Shown: positions 11,991-62,250, counted from the stretch's first letter. The stretch: 64,000 nucleotides of DNA from Rebecca billardiae RCC1528 (GCA_965240325.2 OZ251245.1:1178001-1242000), one strand, 5' to 3'. Translations and numbers: made by a program. The notes: generated by a model from the sequence alone, not told the origin.

Positions 11991-12104
11991 GCCAGCCGCC
12001 GTCTTCGCCATCAGCGTCGGCGGCTAGCTGCCTTGAACCTCACGGAGCCAGCGAGCCAGCGGCTCCCCTTCGCTTTGACGCGCTCTACTCGAGTCTCGAC
12101 CCGA

Positions 12105-12677
12105 AGCCCTTCCGCTCGCAAGCGATCTCGTCCAGGCCTCGTGGAGGTGGAGAAGGACACAAAAAAGGAGCGAAGATTGCTGAGATGCTAAGGAGATTGC
12201 GGCCAAGCCATCATGCCTTCCGGGATGACCATTGGCTCGTTTTCTTCCTGATTCCAGTCTTTCGCCTGATGGTATTGAGATAATATGTCTCACTTTGGCG
12301 ACCGCTCATTTTTCGATCCCCCCCCAACCGACCAATGGGAAGGCGGAGCCGCGACTCGCTCTGAAAATGCGTGAATTGTTTCGCGGTCTGGCGGACCGGC
12401 CCGTGGAAAAACGCAGCGGCTTGGAGTTATATTGAATAATTGGAGCGTTATTACGACGACAATTTATTCTCTAACAGTTATTATTTGCTGTTTGGCGTGA
12501 TATGATAATAATGTTACAGATATGTCAGTCAGCACTAGTCACGACATGCATAGGCCCTTGGCTACATAGGCCGCCTGCTATGAAGCTACAGTTAACAGCG
12601 ACGATATATATATATATATATATATATGCGTATATATCTCTCTCTACTCTCTCTCTCTCTCTCTCTAGAGAGAGACT

Positions 12678-12711
<34 letters not shown>

Positions 12712-12759
12712 GAGCAGAGATCATCCTGGGACGCGGCGCGGCGGCGCGGCCGCGCATAC

Positions 12760-12847
<88 letters not shown>

Positions 12848-13129
12848 CATACATACATACATACATACATACATACATACATACATACATACATACATAC
12901 ATACATACATACATACATACATACATACATACATACATACATACATACATACATACATACATACATACATACATACATACATACATACATACATACATAC
13001 ATACATACATACATACATACATACATACATACATACATACATACATACATACATACATACATACATACATACATACATACATACATACATACATACATAC
13101 ATACATACATACATACATACATACATACA

Positions 13130-13162
<33 letters not shown>

Positions 13163-13163
13163 T

Positions 13164-13259
<96 letters not shown>

Positions 13260-13602
13260 TAGCCGTCCTCGTGACGCTGCGTTTTTTGTCGGGCCTGGGC
13301 CGCAACCCGCGAACAATTCACGCTTTTTTTCGCGATGCCCGCGGTTCTGCCTTCCCATTGGTCGGTCGATGGATCATCTCAACTTCTCCCGGGACAAAGT
13401 GAGACATATTATCTCAATAGCATCTTTATGAATCTTTGGAATCAAAGTTGAAAGAGCCAATCGTCATCCCGAAAGGCACGATGATGCCGATTCGGCCTAG
13501 CTGCAATCTTGTTAGCATCTCGGCCACTGTTCGCTGGATTTGTGCGGGTTTCTCAGCGGTCGAAGGGGTCTCAAGCAAAGTTGAAGGCTTGCGGGAGCGG
13601 AA
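12105..13602. repeat. Diverged ~320-bp inverted repeat (12105-12420 vs 13275-13602), probably transposon ends, flanking microsatellites
   Basis: Shared blocks such as TATTGAGATAATATGTCTCACTTTG / CAAAGTGAGACATATTATCTCAATA and CCGACCAATGGGAAGGC / GCCTTCCCATTGGTCGG. Confidence 0.8.
12604..13256. repeat. Compound microsatellites (TA)n(CT)n(GA)n and (TA)n(TACA)n(TA)n
   Basis: Directly visible; the TACA tract spans ~12842-13157. Confidence 0.98.
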
Positions 13603-14049
13603 AACTACAGGGTCTCCAACATTAAACTGGACACTTTGGGCAGCAGCTCAGCGTACGGCCTGTGGCTGCCTCGCGCGGGGTCAGGAGCGGCCAGCTCGGC
13701 TCGTGTGCACCCCACTAGGTCTGTCTGCGACCGCGCATAGCCGGGCAGCCCGCGTGGAGCACCCCTGTCTGGGTCATGCGGACAGTCGGCACAAGGCTGG
13801 TCGTGAGGGCCGTGAAGCAGCCGTGTGGCTTCTGCGCATGTCTGTAGCCAGCAAGCCCGCTCAAGGCCGCGCAGATATTATTACGTGGCATGGTCGATGA
13901 CTATGCGGCATGCGCTCGACAGCCCTGGGCAAGCCCGGACGTAGCGCTACACCAGGAGTATATACGGCTCGATCGGACCAGCCTACCAGTTGCGCACCTC
14001 GCTTGCACAGCTGCTGCACAGCCCATCGATCGGCTCTGGCCGTGCAGGC

Positions 14050-48194: not shown

Positions 48195-49803
48195 GCGCGC
48201 GGCGCCCCGGTGCGCGCAGCCCGCGGAGCCGCGGCCGCTGGCGTGCACGGCGAGGGCCACTGGGCCAGGTGGCCAGGCACGGCGTGGCCGCGCCGAGCCA
48301 GTGTGCCCGCCGGGCCGCCGGTTTCGCCGGTCCGCGGCCGTCAGTCGGCCCGGACTCGCGCGCTCGACTGGCGCGTTACCGCATGCACACGGCACAGGCC
48401 GTCGGCGTCAGGCGGCTCGTCAGGCGGTCGTCGGGCGACGCCGTGACGCCCGTGGGGCCCCGTGGCCGTGGCCGTGGCCTTGCCCCGCGTGCGTACTGCT
48501 AGACCGTTAAGACCGTCGTAGTAGAGGCGGTAGAATCACCCCGTAGCGGGCCGTACCGGTAGGCTGGCATCGGATCCCGGATGACTGATGATTATTCACG
48601 GTCCTGATCGTATATCGGATGATGTGATGACGATGACGATGCAAAGTCGCTGCGAGGCGCCTCGGATATTGAGCCGCGCTGCGCTGAGCCTGATGAATAC
48701 AGGCTGGTCTCACCAAGAACTTCCCGAGCGCTGCCGACGACGTGTCCGCGCTCGCGGCGGGCGAGCACGGGGAATCGGCTGAGTACGATCGCTCGCATCG
48801 TGGGTCTAGTCCCCGACAAAATTGTCCGCGGAGCCGCGCGCGTCGCTCACCTCGTGCCCGGCGCTCCGCCGCGGAGGCGCCGTCACAGTGGTTTTCACAG
48901 TGGGCCGAGCAGTCTGAAGTGGCGCTGAACTGAGGTTTCGTCGGGGTTTCCGCAGTCCGGCGGGCTTCTGCCGCTTCGGACGCCCAGGCGGCATCCATCA
49001 CCACGAGGTCGGCCACGCGCGGACCTGGCCCGCGCGGAGGCGGAGCATGGCGCACTGCTTGATGACTGCGCCCGCGCGAGCCGTTCCATGATCGCTGTGG
49101 TTACAGCCAAAGCCCCTGCCTCTGTTGGTGGGACCTCGCCAGATGCACTTGTCACTTGCGCGCCGCTCGAACGGCTCCGAACGAACACGACGAGCACATT
49201 GCACTTCGTCGCAGTTGGCTCACTCGCAGCAGGTATTCGAATCTGTCGCAGTGGAAGCGGGGGGTGCGAGAGCCTACGTACGTCTGTCAAGGGCAGCCGC
49301 ACGCTTCAACATTGCGAAGGAGTTCCGCCCTGAACAGTGCGGCGGCAAGGCGGGTTGAGTGTGCTCCAAGCAACATCGTCAGGCACTGATACAGGTGGGG
49401 AGGCGCAGGAAGGACGTTGCAACGAGCGCGATGAGGCCCACATACCTCGACAGCATGGGAGAGACGCGCTGTGGGACATGAAGACACCTGTCACTCATGC
49501 CAGGTCCCACGTTGACCCGCAACGCTCGGCGGCTTCTGCGGGCGAGAACAACGACGCAATGTTTCAGTGCTACAGCGAGGGTGGGGATGAGGAGAGGGGC
49601 TTGGGGTACGGGCAACCGTGTGAACAACACCACTAGGGGTCGCACGGACCGAGATCGCGCGCCGTTCATTTTTTGCAGGGGGGTGGGGGTTTGAATCTCG
49701 ACAACGGCGAGGCGGACAGAGGCGTGCGACCCCTCGTCGGAGAGCTCTCGATGCGGCCGATTTAATGGCGCCATCGAGAATTTTCCGCAGACGCAGTGGG
49801 ACT

Positions 49804-51997
49804 AATTCTATGATTTAAAGACACAGGCACGAGGGCGCAGCTCTCCTGATTCGTCTGTCGAAGTACTGAATGGAGTTAATGGAGGATGTCGCTGGAGCGC
49901 GTTGGCCGCGGGTGAGGGAGTCGTCGTAACCGATGCTGATCACACGGTCACTGAGGTAGTAGGCGCCCGGGGATGCCGCTGTTTTGCAGTCGTCGTCGGC
50001 CTTGGTCATCATGTAGTTGCCCGCGTCGTCGTCGTCCGAGGCTGTTCAAGTTGATGCCGTAGTGCGGGTAGTGGATGTGGTCGCCCGGGCCGGTGTGCGC
50101 GGCCTAGTGGCCTTGCCGAGTTGAGGGAGTAGTCGCCCTTGCCGTTGAGGAAGTCGTCGTCCTTGCCGTTGAGGAAGTCGTCGCCCTGGCCGCAGAGGAA
50201 GTCGTCGCCCTTGCCGTTGAGGAAGTCGTCGTCCTGGCCGCTGAGGGTGCCTGCGCTGCCCAACCGGGCGCGTCTGGCGCGCCAGCGCCGCGCGCGGCTC
50301 TACGCCAGTGACGGCGGCACGGCGGCAGCCAGGTCACGGGGGGGGTCGGCGAGGGACGCGGTGCGAGCCTGCTTGGCCGGCTTGGCGTCGCTCCCGCCAG
50401 CGGAGGAGGGCCCATCCTCCTCCGCCGGCGTGGACGGCTCGGTCGCCGCGCGCTTGCCGGCTGCCGCGGCGCCGGGGGGCAGGACCAGGCGGTAGTTGGA
50501 CTCCCCGAGCGCCGGCCTGGCCTGTTGCACCTCGGGCCCGTCCGACGGCGCGGCCGCGGTTGGCGGCTGGGGTGGCGGGATGGCATCGTCGGAACCCTCC
50601 CCCTCGGGCTCCTCCGCCTCCGGGCCGGCGGGGTCCGCCGCCTGTTGGTCGGCCGGCTGAGGAGCAGGGCGGCGCGCAGCGGCGGGCGGCGCGGGCGGCA
50701 CAGGCGGCGCGGGCGGCACGCCCCACAGGTTGTGTGGGACGCGGGCGGCGCCGGCGATGCGGCGGCTCGGCTTGAGCGGCGCGAAGAAGATGGGGTGCTC
50801 GGGGTCGATGGGCATGAAACGGAGGCGGAGGAAGATCAGGTTCACACCGCCGGAGTAGATGTTGGTCTCGACGTGCTCACCGTTGGTCACGTACTTGTTG
50901 ATGTCGGGCACGATCTGCTCGTAGAGGGCCCTGTGGAACTGCACGAGCGTCATCGTGGGGCTAACCGGGAGCGTGAGGGACACGTCCTTCGCCTGGGTTG
51001 CGAGGTCGGCCGCCGACAGCGCGAGCATCTCCTGCGTGTGCTCCGTGGTGCACGCCGTGAAAATGTTCGGCATGCACAGGCTGGTGGCCAGGCGGCGGCA
51101 GATGGCCATGTTCTCGAGCACCGATCCGGTGAAGGAGAAAACGTGCTTATTGCCTTTGGGGTCCTGGGTGAGTCCTGCGAGCAGTCGCCCGCCTTGCGAG
51201 TTGGGCGCCACGTCGCTCAGGCAGCGCGCGCTCAGCTTGATCATCGTCGTGCACATCTGCAGGCCCGCATCCCGCCTGGCGGTGGGGGTGCTCGGCCGTT
51301 CCAGCTGCAGCCCGCGCTCGTAGTTGCTGGAAGAGGGGAAGAAGGTCAAGGCGCTCCTGCTGTTGAGACGGTCGCGGAACACGCCGTACTCGTAAGGGGG
51401 CATGGTAGCCGGTGTGGCGGGCGCGGGGCTGCGGAGGGGGGGGGGGGGGGGGGGGCGGGTGCGGGCACTGCGGTGCGAGCGAGGTCGGTGCTGGTGCCAA
51501 AGGCATTTCGGCGCGCGGGGTTGAAATCAAATTTCAAAACCCAGGTCCGGAGTGGCCCCGCCGGTCCCCCGGACCACGGCGGCCCGTCGTGCGTTTCGGG
51601 GGGAGAGGGGTTTGTCGCGAAACGGGCAGGATGGGGAAGGGGGGGGGGGGGGGCTCGCGGCCGCCGCGGGGAGGCCGGGACGGGCGCGGTCTCCACCTGA
51701 GGGCCGGGCGCTGCTCAGGAAGGAGGGCGGCCCACACTCCGCGTGTCGCTCCCCAGTGCCTCCGCACTTCGCCGTCGTGTCGGGATGAGCATGCGCTTGG
51801 CGTCCGCACCGGGCCAGTCCTTGCATGGTCAGCAAGCAGGCGGGGGGGGGGGCGTGCGTGTGCAAGCGCGGGTGGATATGTCGTGTCTGCGATATGCGGA
51901 GTGTTGGATGCGGGTTGCGCCGGTGCCCCAGGGCACCGGTGAGTGTGTAGCTGTTTCGGGCACGCCTCGCGAACGCGAGGCGCTGGAAGACATGGCC
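49804..51997. mobile_element. Unclassified 2.2-kb element, copy 1
   Basis: Near-identical to 59498-61711 with the same ends AATTCTATG... and ...CATGGCC; unrelated flanks. Confidence 0.85.
50300..51403 (-). CDS. Element-encoded unknown protein (367 aa; globular N-terminal region, Pro/Ala-rich tail)
   Basis: Complex, coding-like ORF kept open in both copies. Confidence 0.75.
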   Translation of the reverse strand: MPPYEYGVFRDRLNSRSALTFFPSSSNYERGLQLERPSTPTARRDAGLQMCTTMIKLSARCLSDVAPNSQGGRLLAGLTQDPKGNKHVFSFTGSVLENMAICRRLATSLCMPNIFTACTTEHTQEMLALSAADLATQAKDVSLTLPVSPTMTLVQFHRALYEQIVPDINKYVTNGEHVETNIYSGGVNLIFLRLRFMPIDPEHPIFFAPLKPSRRIAGAARVPHNLWGVPPAPPVPPAPPAAARRPAPQPADQQAADPAGPEAEEPEGEGSDDAIPPPQPPTAAAPSDGPEVQQARPALGESNYRLVLPPGAAAAGKRAATEPSTPAEEDGPSSAGGSDAKPAKQARTASLADPPRDLAAAVPPSLA

Positions 51998-52357
51998 GAG
52001 GGAGGACCGCCTGGCTGGTCCCCAGCTGGTCCCCAGCGGGACTGAAAAAAAAAATCCAAAGCCTCGGGAAGTTCTTGGTGAGACCAGCCTGTATGACACT
52101 GGCGGCCGCCGCGCGCCGCCCGGGGCCGCGGCGCAGCGCAAATAATATAGTCGGTCAGGGCGCCCGGCCACCCCTTGGCCTTGGGCCCTCGTCCGGTCTC
52201 TTGCGCGCTGACGTGTGACGAAGACCGCGTTGATACGGCCTTCCCCGACTCCACATCCACCGCATCAGCATCATCGCCGTCCTTGCCGCCACTGCCGATG
52301 CTGCGCCAGCGCGTGTGGCGGGCACGGGCGGCGGGGTTCAGACAGCTGGCAGGGTGC

Positions 52358-52864
52358 TCAGATCATCTCCCGTGGCCGAGCTGGCTGAGGCCGCGCGCCA
52401 GGCCCGTCGTCGCGCTCGTCATCCAGGTCGGCGGCCGCGTCGTTGGGCCTGCCGTGCTGCTCGGTCTGCTCGGTGCGGTCCGACCTCACCCGCATGTAGT
52501 AGAAGCCACCGATGATCGCGCAGACGAGCACGATCGGTCCGGCGTCGCGCAGCGTGCGGTCGACCGACTCGTCGGTGCCAAAGCGGTCGTGCAGGATGCA
52601 GCACGGGTAGAGGAGGTACACGCAGTACAGCAGCAGCGCGGCCACGATCATCAGCTGGATCGCGACTGAGTTCACAATGTTGTTTTGCAGCAACCGCAGG
52701 TTGCGGAAGAGCCAGTTGATCGAGTGGAAGAACTGGTTGAACACATTCACGATGCCGGTGAAGCTCTGCAGCTGGCCGAGCCCCGGGATGCCCTGCGGGG
52801 CGGCGCCGCCACCGCCGCCACCCGTCGGGAGGCGCATGCCGCCCGGCAGCCGCATGCCCTGCAT
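52358..52864 (-). CDS. Small membrane protein (168 aa, about 2 TM), unknown function
   Basis: Hydrophobic segments VAIQLMIVAALLLYCVYLLY and IVLVCAIIGGFYY; coding-type codon usage. Confidence 0.75.
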   Translation of the reverse strand: MQGMRLPGGMRLPTGGGGGGAAPQGIPGLGQLQSFTGIVNVFNQFFHSINWLFRNLRLLQNNIVNSVAIQLMIVAALLLYCVYLLYPCCILHDRFGTDESVDRTLRDAGPIVLVCAIIGGFYYMRVRSDRTEQTEQHGRPNDAAADLDDERDDGPGARPQPARPREMI

Positions 52865-52937
52865 GCTGGCACCGGCTCGGTCTTGATCAAGCCGCGCGGC
52901 TGGACAACCGGAGTGCCGGACGGCTTCGAGTGTTCAT

Positions 52938-53928
52938 GATAAGCCCATTTCACGTAACCAACCTCCAATAGCTGGCGGGAGTCTGAACTACAAACAATTC
53001 TGTCCGAGCCGAGAGGAGTTTGGGGGGAGGGCCGGGGCGGTGAGCCGCGTTGCCAGCCGCTCGGTGGCGCCGCCGCCGAGGTCGTCTCCGCGTCACACAT
53101 CGACGTGCGTCGGTGTGATGTGTCTCATCGGGCGTGTGTGAGTACTTGCAGGGGCCCTGCATTCCTTGAAGGCTCGGCATCGCACCCCTCCGAGTGTGCA
53201 CGCTCGTCAACGCCGTGCCGTGCGACTGCTGCGCGTGTGGGCTTACACGCCGGCAATGTAGGCGAGACGAGCGGGGCTGAGCGCCAAGAGATGGGCGCTT
53301 CCACGCGGGAGTAGTCTGGTGCGAGGCCCCCGATCCCTCGCGCATCGGCTCGAAGCGCGCCTGGAGCTGAAGTAGCGAGTCTGTCCGCTGCCAACGCGAT
53401 GGCCACACCATCGTCCAAATCGCAGAAACACGTCGTTCTGAGGTGTTTTAGCTCAGCTTGGGATGGGGGAGACAAGACTGTGCAGGAGAGTGCCCAGTGC
53501 TTCAGGCGCGCTTCGAGCCGATGCGCGAGGGATCGGGGGCCTCGCACCAGACTACTCCCGCGTGGAAGCGCCCATCTCTTGGCGCTCAGCCCCGCTCGTC
53601 TCGCCTACATTGCCGGCGTGTAAGCCCACACGCGCAGCAGTCGCACGGCACGGCGTTGACGAGCGTGCACACTCGGAGGGGTGCGATACCGAGCCTTCAA
53701 GGAATGCAGGGCCCCTGCAAGTACTCACACACGCTCGATGAGACACATCACACCGACGCACGTCGATGTGTGACGCGGAGACGACCTCGGCGGCGGCGCC
53801 ACCGAGCGGCTGGCAACGCGGCTCACCGCCCCGGCCCTCCCCCCAAACTCCTCTCGGCTCGGACAGAATTGTTTGTAGTTCAGACTCCCGCCAGCTATTG
53901 GAGGTTGGTTACGTGAAATGGGCTTATC
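52938..53928. repeat. ~1-kb palindrome (430-bp arms, 131-bp spacer), foldback/MITE-like
   Basis: 52938-53367 is the reverse complement of 53499-53928 with only a few mismatches. Confidence 0.97.
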
Positions 53929-53993
53929 GGGCCACGCCACGCCGCTTTTCTCCATTTCCCCCACTGCGGGAACCGGCACGTCCAAAAGCTATC

Positions 53994-55034
53994 ATGCGGC
54001 GCTCGCTGCCCCTCGCGCTGGCGCTCGCCGCGTCGGCGGCGGCGGGCGAGGACGGCGGCGGCGGCGGCGCGGCGTACCCCCTGCTCCAGTGGGCCCCTCC
54101 GGAAATCTCCTTCTTCGCCGGGCACGTGGACGACGGCGCGGGCGGCGCGACGCGGTCGTTCATGCACGCCGTCTTCAAGGTGGGCCCGCGCGACGTGCTC
54201 TCGCCCAACATCACGGGGTTCGCGCTGCTGCGGCTGGACGACGGGCCGTGGATCCCGGCGCCGCCGCTCATGTTCGAGCGCCACCTCACGCGCGACCCGG
54301 ACGGCACGGGCTACCAGATGTGGAACGCGTACTACCAGGCGCTGCGGCCGCCGACCGTGCGCGCGGGCAGCGGCGGCGCGCTCACGGTGAACCCGCTGCC
54401 GCGCGAGATCTGCGTGAAGGTGCGGATGGTGGACCTGAGCACGGGCGAGAGCAACCGCCTCGACCCCGCCTGCGCCCCCTTCGCCACGCACTCCTTGCGC
54501 GCGCGCGCCGACGCGCCGATGCGGGCCGAGATCTCAAGCCAGTACTCGGCAGCGACGGCCCTCTGCTCGAAGGAGCTGCAGCTGTGCCGCGTGAACGTGC
54601 ACCTGGTGGTGTGGTCCACGGCGAGCGCGGACCCGCTCGACCCGGTGCGCGCGGGCGCCGCCTTCAGCTTCGACGGCGGGCCCTGGCACGAGGGCGTCGC
54701 GATGTACGAGCAGCACTTTGACCCGAGGCCGGCGCCGTCGACGGCGGCCGCGCTCGGCACCGCCGACGGCGGCGGCGGCGGCGGCGGCGAGATGGGGGCG
54801 GCGGTGGCGGAGCGCGTGGGCGTGCAGCCGCTGAGCCACGCGATGCAGGCCGACTGGGACGAGGTGCTCCCGTACCGCTCCGCCGCCAACCGGCTGCCCA
54901 GCCGCGTGTGCTACCGCGTGCGCTTCGAGGACGCGCGCGACCTGAGCACCGCCTCGCTCGACGGCTGCATGGCCGTGTGCCACTCGCTGCACGAGTTTGC
55001 CACGCCGTACTGCCCCGAGCTGCACGGGGGGTGA
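53994..55034 (+). CDS. Secreted protein of unknown family with an internally duplicated beta-rich domain
   Basis: Signal peptide MRRSLPLALALAASAAA; repeats LRLDDGPW..LPREICVKVRM and FSFDGGPW..LPSRVCYRVRF. Confidence 0.8.
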   Translation: MRRSLPLALALAASAAAGEDGGGGGAAYPLLQWAPPEISFFAGHVDDGAGGATRSFMHAVFKVGPRDVLSPNITGFALLRLDDGPWIPAPPLMFERHLTRDPDGTGYQMWNAYYQALRPPTVRAGSGGALTVNPLPREICVKVRMVDLSTGESNRLDPACAPFATHSLRARADAPMRAEISSQYSAATALCSKELQLCRVNVHLVVWSTASADPLDPVRAGAAFSFDGGPWHEGVAMYEQHFDPRPAPSTAAALGTADGGGGGGGEMGAAVAERVGVQPLSHAMQADWDEVLPYRSAANRLPSRVCYRVRFEDARDLSTASLDGCMAVCHSLHEFATPYCPELHGG

Positions 55035-55524
55035 GCGGGGCCGCGGCGCGCGGGCTGGCGCGCGCCGGGAGAGGCGGCGGCGGACGGGCCGCCCAGGCCT
55101 CAGCCACTCGTCGCAGATAATCGCCGCGCCGAGTCGTACCGTAGTACGTACCGTGAATGTTACGATCGACCGACACGGAGACCGTAGTCCGTACTCGCGC
55201 GCGGTACGGTCACTACTCACTACGGACTACCGGACTTAGGACGAGTCTTCAACTAGCAGCGCCTCTGACTACAACTAGCAGCCATGCACGCCTGCTAGCT
55301 AGCGCTGGTTCCGTACTGTGTAAGTCTACTGAGCGCACGGACGGGCGGCGCCGCGCTGCGCCGGCGGAGTCCGACGCATCATCATCGATCATCGATCGTC
55401 CGCGCGTGATACGCCGTCGGTGGCGCGGGCTCCGGCCCCGGCCGACCGGGGTCCGGGCTCGTGCATGAACGTGAGCTCGTACAGTAGCTACGTCACGACT
55501 GCTAGTCACTACCGGTGACCGAGC

Positions 55525-58500
55525 TCAGCTTAGGTATGTCAGCAGCCGCCGAATCGTCTCGAAGCCCGATTGGCTCTTGTCCACACAGAAGTCCAGACCG
55601 GCCGCCTCAAACTCAGCGCGCTCGGCGGAGCCGGCGGGATCGCCTGGTGACGAAGCAGCAGCAGGGTGCGCCCGGCGGGGGAGGCGGGCGCGTAAGCGCG
55701 GGGCGGCGCGGGGTGATGAGCCGCGGCGCACAGCACTGTCGGCACGCCGGCACGCCGGCGCGGCAGCAGAACGCGCGCACGCACGCGGGCTCGGCGCGTG
55801 CCTCGGCGCCGCGCACCTGTCATCCCGACGATCCGGCCGGTGTACCCGCGGCGGCGCAGCTCGCGCGTGGCCTCCGTGCCGCCCATCACGGGCATCTGCG
55901 GCCGCGCAGTCGCAGAGGTGAGAGGGCGGGGGCGAAGGAGGAGGGGGCGGTGAGCGCGCGGCGCGGCGCGCATCGGCGGAGGGCGCGCGCTGGGGTGCGT
56001 ACGCTCGCCCTGCCGCGTGCTCACCTGGTTGTCCATCACGATCAAGCCCCAGCGCTCCGGCGCCGCCATCACGGTCGCCACCGCCTCCGCCCCGTCGGCC
56101 GCGTGCGCGTACGGCAGTGCCGCGCGCTTGAGCAGCCGCAGCTCGAGGGCGCAGCGCAGCAGGCGGTCGTCGTCGACGTGGAGCACGGCGTTGCGCGCGG
56201 TGCTGGCGGCGGCGCTGCTGCTCGGACGGGCCGGGGCGCTGCGCTGCGGCGCGCACGAGCGCACGCGCGTGAGGGCGGGCGGACGGGAGGCCTGGACAGA
56301 CGCTGCAGCTGCAGCGGGCGACTCGTCGCGCTCGTCCGAGCGACGCCGCGGCGCGAGCACGCTGCGCCGTGAGCTGCGCGCTGAGTCGCTCTCCGAGGGC
56401 GAGGGCGGCGTGTCCACGCACCGCCTCGCCGCGTCGAAGCGCGGGGGCGGGGGCGTGTCCACGGCTGCCCCGCCGCCGTGCGCTGGCTCGGGCTGGCACC
56501 GCGCGAGCGGCCGCTGCCCGGCGGCCCAGGGCCGCGGCAGCGACGCTGCCGCTGCCGCTGCTGCGTGCAGCGGCGAGGCGAGCGGCTCCGCCTCGTCGTC
56601 AGAGCAGTGGTCAGAGGCGCCAGAGCCCTCCGCCTGCGCGCCGCCACTGCCGGACGACGAGTCCATCTCGACCCACCAGCGGCTGGCCGGCGGGGAGTCG
56701 GCGCCGCCGTCGCGCAGCGCGCGCGCGCCCTCGGCGAGCCCGCCGCGGTGGCGGCCCTTGTCTGCGCGCGCCGCGCTCGCGCGCGCCTCGGCCGGCGGCG
56801 GCGGCGGCGGCGTGCCTCGGCGTGCGCTGAGCGAGCGTGCGCTGAAAAGTGGCGAGTGGTCGCTGCTGCTGCCGCTGCCGCCGCGCCCGATGGGCGGCGT
56901 GCGCGGCGCGTCCGTCCCAGCCGCGCTCGCGCTCGCGCGCCCCGCATCGCACGCGCCGCACGGCTCGCGCTCGGCCGCAGCGGTGCCGCCCACGCCCCGC
57001 CGGGCTGGCGGCGGCGTCGGCGCGGCCGCCGCCCACGCCGGCGCGCGCCGCGCGGGCGGCGACGGCGGTTTCGGCGGCGCCGCCGCCCACGCCGGCGCGC
57101 GCCGCGCGGGCGGCGTGGACGCGCACGCGCGCGCGCCGGCGGCGGCGTCGGGCGCGCCCACGCCGTGCTGGAAGCGCGCGCGCTGCCGCGGCGACACCTC
57201 TCGGCTGCCGGGGCCGCACGGCCGCGCCCTCGCGACGGCGACGACGTGAGGCGGCGGCGCGGCGCGCGCGCGCATCGGCTGCGTGCGCACCGCACCGCCG
57301 CTGCCTGCCGAGTCCGAGGCCGAGGCCTCGGCCTCGAGCTGCGGCGGGGCCGGCGCGGCGCAGCGCAGCGTGAGCTCGAACACAGCGCCCCGCCCGATCC
57401 CCTCGGAGCGCAGGCTGAAGCCCGCGCCCTCGTGCAGTGCGACGATCCTTCTGACCACGGCCAGACCGACTCCCGCGCCGCCGCGGCCGCCCATCTGCCC
57501 CGCGGCCACGCCCGCCTCGAAGGGCTCGCCCTCCGCGTGCGCGCGCAGCTGCTCGGCGCTGAGGCCTGGCCCCGCGTCGGTGACCGCGACGCGCACGCGC
57601 CACGCGCCGTCCTCCGCGCGCTCCGCCTCCGCCGCCTCCACCGTCACCGTCGCGCCCGGCTCTGAGTGCTTGAGGGCGTTGCTCACGCCGTGGCCGAGCG
57701 CCTGCTGCAGACGGCGCCGGTCGCCGTCGATCGCGGCGCCCGCGCCCGCGCAGCACGCGGGCAGCGGGCGCACGAGCAGCCCGATCCGCTTGGCCAGCGC
57801 GATGGGCGCGTGCGCCTCGACCGCGCCGTGCACGAGCTCGGCGAGGCCGAAGCGGCCGCGCGCGAGCGCAACGCCCGGGGCCTCAAGGATCTGCAGCTGC
57901 AGCACGTCACACAGCACCGCGTCCGCGAGTCTGCACGCGGAGTCGAGCGCGTCCAGCCGTGCGGAGAGCGCCTCGGCCTCGGCCTCGGCCTCGGCCTCGC
58001 GCGCGCGCTCGGGCGTGGGCGCGGCTGCGCGCTCGGAGCGCGGCGAGGCGTCGCCGGTCGAGCGCGTGGGGCGGCGCTGTGCGCATCCGGCCGCACACAG
58101 CCGGAGCCTGCCGTCGTCATGCGCGTCTTGCAGCCAGCCGACGAGCGCGCTGACGGTGAGGAGAGGGGTGCGCAGGTCGTGGCTGAGTGTGCGCACGAGC
58201 CGCGAGCGCGCGCTCACGGCCGCCTCGCGCGCGCGCGCCTCGGCCGCGCCCTCGGCCTCGGCGCGCGCGCGCTCGGCATGCTCGAGCACGCGAGCATGCG
58301 CGCGCAGCTGCGCGCGCAGCGCGCCGAGACGCGCGCGGCAGAGGAGCGCGAGGGCGCACGCCGCGCAGAGCTGGAGCGTGCTGGAGACGCGCGTCTCGAT
58401 CGGGAGCTTCGCGTCCGCGTGCCAGGCCGCGGCCAGCGTCGAGGCGAGCGCAGGCGCCAGCGGGTCGGCGCGGAGCGCGCGCGACGGGAGCAGCAGCAGC

Positions 58501-59030
58501 AGCAGAGGCATGCCCACGCGCGCGGCCGCAACGGCGACGGAGGACGTCGCCGGGTGGGTCTCGGCGCGGAGGCTGCGCGTGAGGACGCCCGAGCCGAGCC
58601 AGCGCACCGCCGCCGCGGGGAGGCACAGAGCCGCGCTGAGGAGCGTGCCGCGCGCGTGCCGCGCGCTCGGCCGCGTGCGCTGGCTGAGCAGGCCGATGCA
58701 CGCCGCACCGCCCGATGCGGCGAGCAAGGGCGCGGCCTGTGGATCGGGCGCGGACTCGTTGAGGACGAGTGTGCCCACCGCGCCAAGCGCGAACGCCAGC
58801 GCCACCAGCGGCCCTGCTTCCTCCTCCTCGTCCATGCCGCGAGCGCTGTCGCGACGAGTTGGCGCCGGCTTTGCGCCGAGCGGCGGCGCGTCGGCAGTGG
58901 ATCCGACTTCGTTGGGGTCGACGAGGGCCGCCTGCGACGCGTCGAGCTCGGCGTGCGCGCTCGGGCCGCGTGCGCCGGGGAGCGGCCGTCGCTCTCGGTG
59001 TTGCCTCCCTTTGCGTGCTGTGGAGCCCAT
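55525..59030 (-). CDS. Membrane hybrid histidine kinase (HisKA, HATPase_c, REC); introns 55896-56024, 55644-55816
   Basis: H box LSHDLRTPL, N box SNALKH, G1 VTDAGPG, G2 GAGVGLAVVRRIV, receiver VLHVDDD..VMDNQ|MPVMGG..VDK. Confidence 0.93.
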
Positions 59031-59497
59031 CGGTCGGGGTTGGGAGGGGTGTCGTTGCTGGTGGTTCGCCGTGAAGGTGTGACGCGTCGTCAAAAAATGT
59101 GGCTACGGGGGGTACGGTTAAATATTGTGGTTATCCTCTCGTCTACGCATAGGAGTAGCGCGGGTACTAAATAGCCTGAATCGTTTTGCCCGAAATTTGG
59201 CGCAATAAGTTCGTCGACTTGCCGCCGCCTTTAAGACATGTGGTGTGGAATCGTTCAGTGATTGATACAGTGGAAGCCCGAGAGTACAAATGCGCCCTCG
59301 ATGGGAGTAATTTGCTGGTTGAGATCAATATCGTATGGGCAAGAATCGGGAAGCTCATTACTATCATATACAAGTTTGGGGGCTGGTTATTAGTATCTCG
59401 GGCGGCTGAATCATCATACCCAGCTCAAAGTCATAATGATAGACCCAAGGGAGATACAGCTATCTCCAGAGCTACCTTGATAGACCTCACACAGACC

Positions 59498-61711
59498 AAT
59501 TCTATGATTTAAAGACACAGGCACGAGGGCGCAGCTCTCCTGATTCGTCTGTCGAAGTACTGAATGGAGTTAATGGAGGATGTCGGAGCGCGTTGGCCGC
59601 GGGTGAGGGAGTCGTCGTAACCGATGCTGATCACACGGTCACTGAGGTAGTAGGCGCCCGGGGATGCCGCTGTTTTGCAGTCGTCGTCGGCCTTGGTCAT
59701 CATGTAGTTGCCCGTGTCGTCGTCGTCCGAGGCTGTTCAAGTTGATGCCGTAGTGCAGGTAGTGGATGTGGTCGCCCGGGCCGGTGTGCGCGGCCTAGTG
59801 GCCTTGCCGAGTTGAGGGAGTAGTCGCCCTTGCCGTTGAGGAAGTCGTCGTCCTTGCCGTTGAGGAAGTCGTCGCCCTGGCCGCAGAGGAAGTCGTCGCC
59901 CTTGCCGTTGAGGAAGTCGTCGTCCTGGCCGCTGAGGGTGCCTGCGCTGCCCAACCGGGCGCGTCTGGCGCGCCAGCGCCGCGCGCGGCTCTACGCCAGC
60001 GACTGCGGCGCGGCGGCAGCCAGGTCACGGGGGGGTCGCCGAGGGACGCGGTGCGAGCCTGCTTGGCCGGCTTGGCGTCGCTCCCGCCAGCGGAGGAGGG
60101 CCCATCCTCCTCCGCCGGCGTGGACGGCTCGGTCGCCGCGCGCTTGCCGGCTGCCGCGGCGCCGGGGGGCAGGACCAGGCGGTAGTTGGACTCCCCGAGC
60201 GCCGGCCTGGCCTGTTGCACCTCGGGCCCGTCCGACGGCGCGGCCGCGGTTGGTGGCTGGGGTGGCGGGATGGCATCGTCCGAACCCTCCCCCTCGGGCT
60301 CCTCCGCCTCCGGGCCGGCGGGGTCCGCCGCCTGTTGGTCGGCCGGCTGAGGAGCAGGGCGGCGCGCAGCGGCGGGCGGCGCGGGCGGCACAGGCGGCGC
60401 GGGCGGCACGCCCCACAGGTTGTGTGGGACGCGGGCGGCGCCGGCGATGCGGCGGCTCGGCTTGAGCGGCGCGAAGAAGATGGGGTGCTCGGGGTCGATG
60501 GGCATGAAACGCAGGCGGAGGAAGATCAGGTTCACACCGCCGGAGTAGATGTTGGTCTCGACGTGCTCACCGTTGGTCACGTACTTGTTGATGTCGGGCA
60601 CGATCTGCTCGTAGAGGGCCCTGTGAAACTGCACGAGCGTCATCGTGGGGCTAACCGGGAGCGTGAGGGACACGTCCTTCGCCTGGGTTGCGAGGTCGGC
60701 CGCCGACAGCGCGAGCATCTCCTGCGTGAGCTCCGTGGTGCACGCCGTGAGAATGTTCGGCATGCACAGGCTGGTGGCCAGGCGGCGGCAGATGGTCATG
60801 TTCTCGAGCACCGAGCCGGTGAAGGAGAAAACGTGCTTATTGCCTTTGGGGTCCTGGGTGAGTCCTGAGAGCAGTCGCCCGCCTTGCGAGTTGGGCGCCA
60901 CGTCGCTCAGGCAGCGCGCGCTCAGCTTGATCATCGTCGTGCACATCTGCTGGCCCGCATCCCGCCTGGCGGTGGGGGTGCTCGGCCGTTCCACCTGCAG
61001 CCCGCGCTCGAAGTTGTTGGAAGAGGGGAAGAAGCTCAAGGCGCTCCTGCTGTTGAGACGGTCGCGGAAAAAGCCGTGCTGGTAAGGGGGCATGGTGGCC
61101 GGTGTGGCGGGCGCGGGGCTGCGGAGGGCCGGGGGGCGGGTGCGGAAGCACTGCGGTGCGAGCGAGGTCGGTGCTGGTGCCAAAGGCATTTCGGCGCGCG
61201 GGGTTGAAATCAAATTTCAAAACCCAGGTCCGGAGTGGCCCCGCCGGTCCCCCGGACCACGGCGGCCCGTCGTGCGTTTCGGGGGGAGAGGGGTTTGTCG
61301 CGAAACGGGCAGGATGGGGAAAAGGGGGGGGGGGGGGGGGGGGGGGGGGGCTCGCGGCCGCCGCGGGGAGGCCGGGACGGGCGCGGTCTCCACCTGAGGG
61401 CCGGGCGCTGCTCAGGAAGGAGGGCGGCCCACACTCCGCGTGTCGCTCCCCAGTGCCTCCGCACAGGCACACCGCAGGTGTTCGCCGTCGTGTCGGGATG
61501 AGCATGCGCTTGGCGTCCGCACCCGGGGCCAGTCCTTTCATGGTCAGCAAGCAGGCGGGGGGGGGGCGTGCGTGTGCAAGCGCGGGTGGATATGTCGTGT
61601 CTGCGATATGCGGAGTGTTGGATGCGGGTTGCGCCGGTGCCCCAGGGCACCGGTGAGTGTGTAGCTGTTTCGGGCACGCCTCGCGAACGCGAGGCGCTGG
61701 AAGACATGGCC
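59498..61711. mobile_element. Unclassified 2.2-kb element, copy 2
   Basis: See copy 1; inserted in an AT-richer segment. Confidence 0.85.
59795..61093 (-). CDS. Element-encoded unknown protein, copy 2 (432 aa, longer S/T-rich tail)
   Basis: ATG at 61093 (MPPYQHG); a 1-nt difference in a G tract extends the frame relative to copy 1. Confidence 0.75.
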   Translation of the reverse strand: MPPYQHGFFRDRLNSRSALSFFPSSNNFERGLQVERPSTPTARRDAGQQMCTTMIKLSARCLSDVAPNSQGGRLLSGLTQDPKGNKHVFSFTGSVLENMTICRRLATSLCMPNILTACTTELTQEMLALSAADLATQAKDVSLTLPVSPTMTLVQFHRALYEQIVPDINKYVTNGEHVETNIYSGGVNLIFLRLRFMPIDPEHPIFFAPLKPSRRIAGAARVPHNLWGVPPAPPVPPAPPAAARRPAPQPADQQAADPAGPEAEEPEGEGSDDAIPPPQPPTAAAPSDGPEVQQARPALGESNYRLVLPPGAAAAGKRAATEPSTPAEEDGPSSAGGSDAKPAKQARTASLGDPPVTWLPPRRSRWRRAARGAGAPDAPGWAAQAPSAARTTTSSTARATTSSAARATTSSTARTTTSSTARATTPSTRQGH

Positions 61712-62250
61712 ACTCGTCGTACTGACCGCGCCCTTAGGGCACGTGGCAGTTCTTCATTAAAGCACACACGCGCTAATCGGACCCTGGCAGCTAATGAGGC
61801 TAAATCGACCATAATGAGACTGACGAATCGACGATGCCAGCGAGTTCCCGCCGCGAATCGTCGAACCGTCGTGATTGCTTCTTGAAGCTTTAAGCGTGAA
61901 ACGTCAGGTTTAAACCAGACCATATTGTAGAATCTTCAGGACCTTCCATCGAGAATATCAAAGCTTGCACACCCCGCGCTGTGATCCCGATGAACGCACT
62001 CAAGCACTCCACTTCTTACAATTGCGAAACGTCAGGTTTAAAGCATGTACACGCACCCGTGTTCGCCGACGTAGATATCGATCTCGGATTCAGACACACC
62101 GAGATAGCGCCGAAAAATGTGGGTGGCGTGAATCGACGTTAAACGCCCTACTTTTACGACCCCGCGCACGACTCTCCTGCTCGGCGTGCGCGCCTCACGG
62201 GCGCACCTGCTCACCAGTAGCAGTACATCAGCCTTTTGACAGCAGGCACG

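Follow-up and report, generated by a model that had tools for sequence, protein, structure and literature searches.

A probable 2.2-kb single-ORF retroposon of Rebecca billardiae RCC1528 that shares its 3' tail and junction motif with a LINE

In this study, we analyzed a pair of repeats, copies A and B, in a 64,000-nucleotide stretch of the Rebecca billardiae RCC1528 genome (GCA_965240325.2, OZ251245.1:1178001-1242000; this whole stretch is called the window, and positions are counted from its first letter). The two copies very probably belong to a family of non-autonomous, non-long-terminal-repeat (non-LTR) retroposons that is mobilized in trans by a 9.24-kb long interspersed nuclear element (LINE). 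This reading follows from the combination of a 3' tail common to the element and the LINE, the same RGTC motif at their 3' junctions, and the 5' truncation of copies. A first-pass annotation of this DNA had already described a non-autonomous element with its own protein, and this holds: the open reading frame (ORF) is intact, and the element contains no reverse transcriptase (RT) or endonuclease. The rolling-circle or tyrosine-recombinase family that the annotation favored is contradicted by ragged 5' ends, short target-site duplications (TSDs) and a LINE-type sequence in the 3' 65 nt, although its alternative, an ORF1-only retroelement, came near the truth insofar as the element is an RT-less single-ORF retroelement; it erred in that the ORF is not the ORF1 of the partner LINE.

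The partner LINE was found by crossing the genomic coordinates of RT matches with those of the 14-nt terminus of the element, for which 100 of 310 termini were compared. Within this sample, the terminus lay 4.4-4.7 kb downstream of three RT genes, in each case on the strand of the gene; the three genes were members of one family. The copy described here is 9.24 kb long (L048:3680 to L047:8922, corresponding to G000:C5:280479-289722 in the region G000:C5:276800-289800). Its sharp 5' end at C5:280479 is common to five other copies with 99-100% identity, making six full-length copies, and the LINE has also left many 5'-truncated copies that end at the identical base. Because the ATG of ORF1 (approximately 523 codons) lies 4 nt from the 5' end common to the six copies, the LINE is practically devoid of a 5' untranslated region (UTR). 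ORF2, which overlaps ORF1 by ATGA, encodes 2159 amino acids (aa) with an Exo_endo_phos domain at 43-270 (E = 4.4e-06) and an RVT_1 domain at 744-1011 (E = 5.7e-24); the best PDB matches of the RT are R2-type non-LTR RTs, and the best database relative is 36% identical. Pfam returned no match for ORF1 or for the C-terminal 1142 aa of ORF2. With an N-terminal apurinic/apyrimidinic (AP) endonuclease followed by a non-LTR RT, and with 5'-truncated copies, the partner is an APE-type LINE; its 3' UTR of 1.2 kb contains a G-run and a 25-nt minisatellite.

Over their last 65 nt, the LINE and the element are 94-96% identical (69 aligned nt with the RGTC junction), and the LINE end is followed by GGTC, which is the same RGTC junction as in the element. 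When the element was compared by blastn and tblastn with the whole 9.24-kb LINE, including its 5' end, ORF1 and ORF2, no similarity was detected beyond this tail. The 65-nt tail is presumed to be the recognition signal for the RT of the LINE.

The family is large and dispersed in the genome (72 Mb in 41 contigs, with a G+C content of approximately 70%). The 14-nt terminus occurs in 310 exact copies, compared with one for the reversed control, which rules out a segmental duplication as the origin of the pair. Diagnostic 24-mers straddling the start of the tail homology, for which the controls gave 0, assign approximately 189 copies to the element and approximately 132 to the LINE; for full-length copies, the corresponding numbers are at least 33 and approximately 6. 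In a genome-wide search with copy A, approximately 30 copies were full length; the partial ones formed a series in which every copy keeps query position 1, the AATT end (1-1492, 1-1287, 1-1217, 1-1179, 1-1116, 1-1083, 1-1045 and 1-699), and their protein matches are missing residues at the N-terminus. Since the only ATG-initiated ORF with a coding signature lies on the minus strand, the AATT end is the 3' end of the element, and since the partial copies all retain this end and lose the other side, the family has a constant 3' end and variable 5' truncation.

The 3' junction reads ...CATAGAATT followed directly by RGTC in 32 of 38 independent junctions. Among the 38, position +1 is A in 18 and G in 19, position +2 is G in 35, position +3 is T in 34 and position +4 is C in 36. 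The even split between A and G at +1, which is seen also within one subfamily, shows that the target, rather than the template, supplied these bases. When the true 5' ends of the copies are used, short direct duplications starting with the RGTC motif become visible, and those elsewhere in the family include AGTCCC, AGTCC, GGTCAG and GGCCCG. A TSD of at least 4 nt was present in 15 of 23 full-length copies, and one of at least 6 nt was present in 3 of 23, as compared with 3.6% of mismatched flank pairs. Additionally, several loci carry tandem tails at one target; at locus L014, a full copy is followed by GGTCC, a 160-nt tail, GGTCCA, a 65-nt tail and then GGTCCAGACC, and the last tail of this tandem is of the LINE type.

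Several results weigh against mobilization by this LINE. The TSD statistics are modest, with 8 of the 23 full-length copies having no TSD of at least 4 nt, although by eye several of these eight have a 3-4 nt repeat starting inside RGTC or extra bases at the 5' junction. Empty-site joints and transcripts were sought in public reads; the one sample found, consisting of short contigs, yielded no joint, and none of the RNA runs contained the stretch. The 65-nt shared tail has no RNA fold beyond chance (z = 0.06). Lastly, the comparison with RT positions covered 100 of the 310 termini, and a second LINE family sharing the tail may exist.

The two copies in the window lie in direct orientation and are approximately 97% identical, the mismatches being chiefly in G-runs together with a few indels. 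No terminal repeats were found within the copies. Their features, together with the flanking duplications, are as follows.

49804..52037, minus strand: copy A, a full-length subfamily-A element of 2,234 bp; 5' end at 52037, 3' end ...CATAGAATT (sense) at 49804
49798..49803, no strand: 3'-side TSD of copy A, GGGACT on the plus strand; holds the RGTC junction motif (AGTC in sense)
52038..52043, no strand: 5'-side TSD of copy A, GGGACT
50300..51403, minus strand: ORF of copy A, 367 aa; N-terminal domain of approximately 220 aa, then a Pro/Ala-rich tail
49804..49868, minus strand: 65-nt 3' tail of copy A, 94-96% identical to the end of the 9.24-kb LINE
50096..50294, minus strand: 24-nt tandem repeats in the 3' region of copy A; GDDFLNGK-like 8-aa units past the stop codon
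51963..51982, minus strand: hairpin 1 of copy A, 9-bp GC stem and 2-nt loop, 55 nt from the true 5' end
51920..51939, minus strand: hairpin 2 of copy A, 9-bp GC stem and 2-nt loop
59498..61723, minus strand: copy B, a full-length subfamily-B element of 2,226 bp; 5' end AGTACGACGAGT-GGCC... in sense
59494..59497, no strand: 3'-side TSD of copy B, GACC on the plus strand
61724..61727, no strand: 5'-side TSD of copy B, GACC
59795..61093, minus strand: ORF of copy B, 432 aa; run-on frame with a damaged C-terminal end
61634..61696, minus strand: hairpins of copy B, at 61634-61653 and 61677-61696

The element consists of a 5' UTR of approximately 640 nt with two GC hairpins, the 367-aa ORF and a non-coding 3' region of approximately 500 nt. 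Much of what the first-pass annotation had read is borne out: a pair of copies at 49804-51997 and 59498-61711, an exact AATT end (both copies begin at AATTC on the plus strand) and insertion after GACY, with AATTC preceded by GACT in copy A and GACC in copy B. The exact right end at ...GGCC that it proposed is instead the point at which the subfamilies diverge, and copies A and B run on past it by 40 nt and 12 nt, respectively. Once these ends are adopted, the reported lack of a TSD no longer holds, since copy A is flanked by GGGACT and copy B by GACC, and the right halves of the empty sites that it reconstructed, GGGACT^GAGG and CAGACC^ACTC, are wrong, because the ends and TSDs lie elsewhere.

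In subfamily A, six copies, namely copy A and five others, are 99-100% identical and carry an extra segment upstream of GGCC (in sense); this segment measures approximately 30 nt and is extended to 40 nt in copy A by the doubling of an 11-nt unit. Subfamily B comprises approximately 24 copies resembling copy B, with an extra 10-12 nt ending in ...ACGACGAGT. The first bases are ragged in both subfamilies, and ragged ends and TSDs in other copies are the very observations that the first-pass annotation had named as refuting its own proposal. In the 5' flanks of element copies at L005 and L015, another dispersed repeat contains GCTGGGGACCAGCC, an exact match to the 14 nt with which the 5' extension of subfamily A begins, and the L015 version of this repeat resembles the unoccupied insertion site of L005. 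Subfamily A may have been founded by a 5' transduction from this dispersed repeat.

Three further features of the window were recorded. An A10 run at 52044-52053 adjoins the 5'-side TSD of copy A and may be the tail of an older insertion or simply target context. Between copies A and B, positions 52938-53928 form a near-perfect inverted repeat with 430-nt arms that are 99% complementary and a 131-nt spacer. Positions 12001-14000 form a low-G+C island (0.45), with values of 0.65-0.87 in the rest of the window.

The ORF of copy A, which runs from 51403 to 50300, is the sole ORF of the element with both an ATG and a coding signature, and no second long ORF was found in the sense direction. In its N-terminal 220 codons, the G+C content at the first, second and third codon positions (GC1, GC2 and GC3) is 0.57, 0.47 and 0.91, respectively, and the flanking UTRs have no such periodicity. 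By comparison, GC3 is 0.90 in a host ORF in the window and 0.70 in ORF2 of the LINE. The codon periodicity and the host-like GC3 indicate a genuine coding sequence with host-like codon usage. The 367-aa frame is retained in 25 of 30 copies; in copy B, the normal stop codon is lost owing to a 1-nt deletion in a C-run (near 60035), and the frame extends to 432 aa. The dN/dS ratio was 1.05 between the two subfamilies, as computed on their majority-rule ORFs, and 1.2-1.6 between families, so that no purifying selection was seen, with power being low because GC3 is near saturation.

The annotation's description of a single long ORF without a recognizable enzyme motif was confirmed: the ORF lies on the minus strand, and Pfam, at E values up to 1, identified no domain in it, nor any ORF1 or Gag family. 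A word search of 5.8 billion proteins with the 367-aa sequence found no relative, and an exhaustive HMMER search of 1.8 billion representatives returned only two spurious repeat matches, a bacterial SpaA-domain protein and a tandem-repeat protein, which we rejected as repeat artefacts. ESM Atlas features gave no usable match, and a PDB sequence search produced nothing meaningful. The AlphaFold model from the single sequence is unreliable (mean pLDDT, 41.6). Comparison with ORF1 of the LINE by BLASTP gave only a low-complexity match (E = 0.65), and no LINE carrying a homologue of the ORF was found among 50 protein-level genomic matches.

Past the stop codon, the 24-nt repeats (50096-50294 in copy A and 59787-59985 in copy B) encode in-frame GDDFLNGK-like octapeptides with a high GC3, and coding-like sequence continues beyond them to a TAA located 14 nt from the element end; in these 3' 500 nt, frame-breaking indels separate the main family from a sister family. 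The region looks like decayed coding sequence, the possible remains of a longer ancestral gene. On the origin of the ORF, the balance is about even for derivation from the transcript of a host gene that gained a 5'-truncated LINE tail and became a self-propagating family. It is rather unlikely, on our estimate, that the 367-aa protein is a host-captured, non-homologous counterpart of ORF1, an RNA-binding protein or chaperone that packages its own RNA and helps to hijack the ORF2 protein of the LINE. If true, this would explain why full-length copies of the element (at least 33) outnumber those of its partner (approximately 6).

Both hairpins are located 27-55 nt from the true 5' end, within the 5' UTR. 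The first-pass annotation was correct that two perfect GC hairpins are present in both copies, but the right end near which it placed them is the 5' end of the transcription unit and not a 3' end. The diverged sister family comprises four to five copies, found in L043-L046; its identity to the main family is 66-70% over the 5' kb and 83% over the 3' 550 nt, and an in-frame deletion reduces its ORF to 128 aa with retention of the C-terminus and the stop codon. In this family, the stem of hairpin 1 is unchanged and that of hairpin 2 is kept except for the outermost one or two pairs, and both loops and the spacer differ. This conservation of the stems suggests a function, most likely within an internal promoter or as a structure of the 5' UTR; no covariation proving an RNA structure was found. 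At L043 and L045, a 5' unit of approximately 400 nt with both hairpins occurs twice in tandem in the sister family, and this arrangement recalls the monomer arrays of mouse L1 promoters.

Taken together, the structure of the copies and of their junctions leads us to infer trans-mobilization by this particular LINE, a position for the nick and an internal promoter containing the hairpins. Transcription would proceed from the minus strand of the window, and the RNA would have its 5' end 12-40 nt upstream of GGCC and its 3' end at ...CATAGAATT. The bottom strand of the target would be nicked after 5'-GACY, and the LINE machinery, acting in trans, would carry out target-primed reverse transcription with the cDNA beginning at the AATT end. 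An early stop of this synthesis would yield the 5'-truncated copies, and a second-strand cut a few bases away would produce TSDs of 3-6 bp starting with RGTC. The RGTC specificity could come either from the endonuclease or from annealing of a short RNA read-through, and the present data fit both.

The rolling-circle (HUH) or tyrosine-recombinase reading would make the element a non-autonomous member of an undescribed DNA family, with the hairpins as termination or recognition signals and insertion without a TSD. The perfect GC hairpins near one end, the fixed GACY motif before the insertion and the approximately one-third of full-length copies without a clear TSD would all suit such a mechanism. 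However, the end that bears the hairpins is the variable, truncated end and not the constant one, both window copies have TSDs, and the constant end is the tail of a LINE with an endonuclease and an RT; the element also has no TC...CTRR ends and no A|T target, and no Rep or tyrosine-recombinase gene lies beside any of the 50 protein-level genomic matches. All the defining features of these two families that could be examined speak against this reading, which we consider highly improbable. Among the named classes, Helitron and IS91 elements were rejected on the ends in window orientation (AATT... and ...CCCCAGC or ...CGTACT), the hairpins at the truncated end and the presence of TSDs, and DIRS, Ngaro and Crypton elements were rejected on the lack of terminal repeats in the copies, the lack of a recombinase beside the ORF matches and, again, the TSDs. 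A Penelope-like element was likewise rejected: neither a ribozyme nor a GIY-YIG domain is present, and the endonuclease of the partner is of the AP type. An Rfam search of 49500-52400 at E values up to 1 revealed no hammerhead ribozyme and no head of the type transcribed by RNA polymerase III (Pol III).

An ORF1-only half-LINE, similar to HAL1 or HeT-A, would instead have the 367-aa protein as a very diverged Gag or ORF1 protein of a LINE that lost its ORF2. The layout of 5' UTR, single ORF, 3' UTR and LINE tail is what such an element would have; the low-confidence structural model predicts helices followed by a beta-alpha-beta-beta unit, and a 128-aa version in the sister family stays in frame up to the same stop codon. 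Yet the element resembles neither ORF1 nor any other part of the partner beyond the tail, no genomic LINE carries a homologue of the ORF, its GC3 of 0.91 is host-like and not that of LINE ORF2 (0.70), and no ORF1 or Gag family matched in Pfam, which makes a half-LINE origin improbable. The element could also be autonomous, with the orphan protein as a new mobility enzyme and the LINE-like tail coincidental or borrowed, and because the protein has no relatives, homology excludes no function. We give this very little credence, since the conserved domain is only approximately 220 aa and has no catalytic motif, dN/dS is about 1 with no detectable purifying selection, the family lacking two-thirds of the protein still has several dispersed copies, and the truncation pattern and junction are identical to those of the LINE.

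Mobilization in trans by a LINE has parallels among known systems. MIR and L2 form a LINE/SINE partnership with a shared 3' tail, SINE denoting a short interspersed nuclear element (PMC5753468). Like MIR, the element is non-autonomous, carries the terminal tens of nucleotides of a LINE, has no poly-A, outnumbers its partner, shows 5' truncation and, in part of its copies, is flanked by short TSDs. Unlike SINEs of this type, it is 2.2 kb and not 80-500 nt long, has no tRNA, 7SL or 5S head according to Rfam, and carries an intact 367-aa ORF, on account of which it is presumably transcribed by RNA polymerase II (Pol II). Without a Pol III head, at 2.2 kb and with a protein-coding capacity, the element is not a SINE. 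The HAL1 ("half-L1") elements of mammals are ORF1-only, non-autonomous L1 derivatives (PMC5753468). The element resembles these non-LTR elements in coding for a protein, in lacking an RT and, probably, in relying on a LINE in trans. HAL1, however, arose by internal deletion of L1 and encodes the ORF1p of its partner, whereas the body and ORF of the element share only the last 65 nt with the LINE; because its ORF is unrelated to the partner ORF1, the element is not of the HAL1 type.

At Drosophila telomeres, HeT-A has one Gag-like ORF and no RT, the RT being supplied in trans. The element is likewise a non-LTR element with a single ORF and probably relies on an RT provided in trans, but HeT-A is telomere-specific and has a recognizable Gag, whereas the family described here is dispersed, uses an RGTC target and carries an orphan ORF. 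Helitron and IS91 elements also bear a GC hairpin close to one end and insert at a short, fixed motif; they differ in that the hairpins of the element lie at its variable 5' end, and in its TSDs, 5' truncations, LINE tail and lack of TC/CTRR ends and of an A|T target. Trans-mobilization by L1 generates retrogenes, processed pseudogenes and composites such as SVA (PMC5753468). In these, as probably in the element, LINE machinery copies a Pol II transcript that is cellular or composite; a cellular origin would agree with the host-like codon usage of the element's ORF. In contrast to retrogenes and SVA, which have a poly-A tail and a relaxed LINE, the element has a specific 65-nt LINE tail, is self-propagating and has its own defined 5' end.

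The mechanism is very probably the known shared-tail relationship of LINEs and SINEs, and the unusual feature is that the element has its own gene for a protein without known relatives. In annotation, repeat masking should cover the approximately 190 copies, intact ORFs included, so that they are not taken for a gene family. What had appeared to be a new class of mobile element becomes a clean pair of a LINE and its parasite in an alga. With a defined partner, a 65-nt shared tail and a sharp RGTC junction, this pair offers a natural system for analyzing how a tail-specific LINE recognizes its template, and it raises the question of whether a non-autonomous retroposon profits from a protein of its own.

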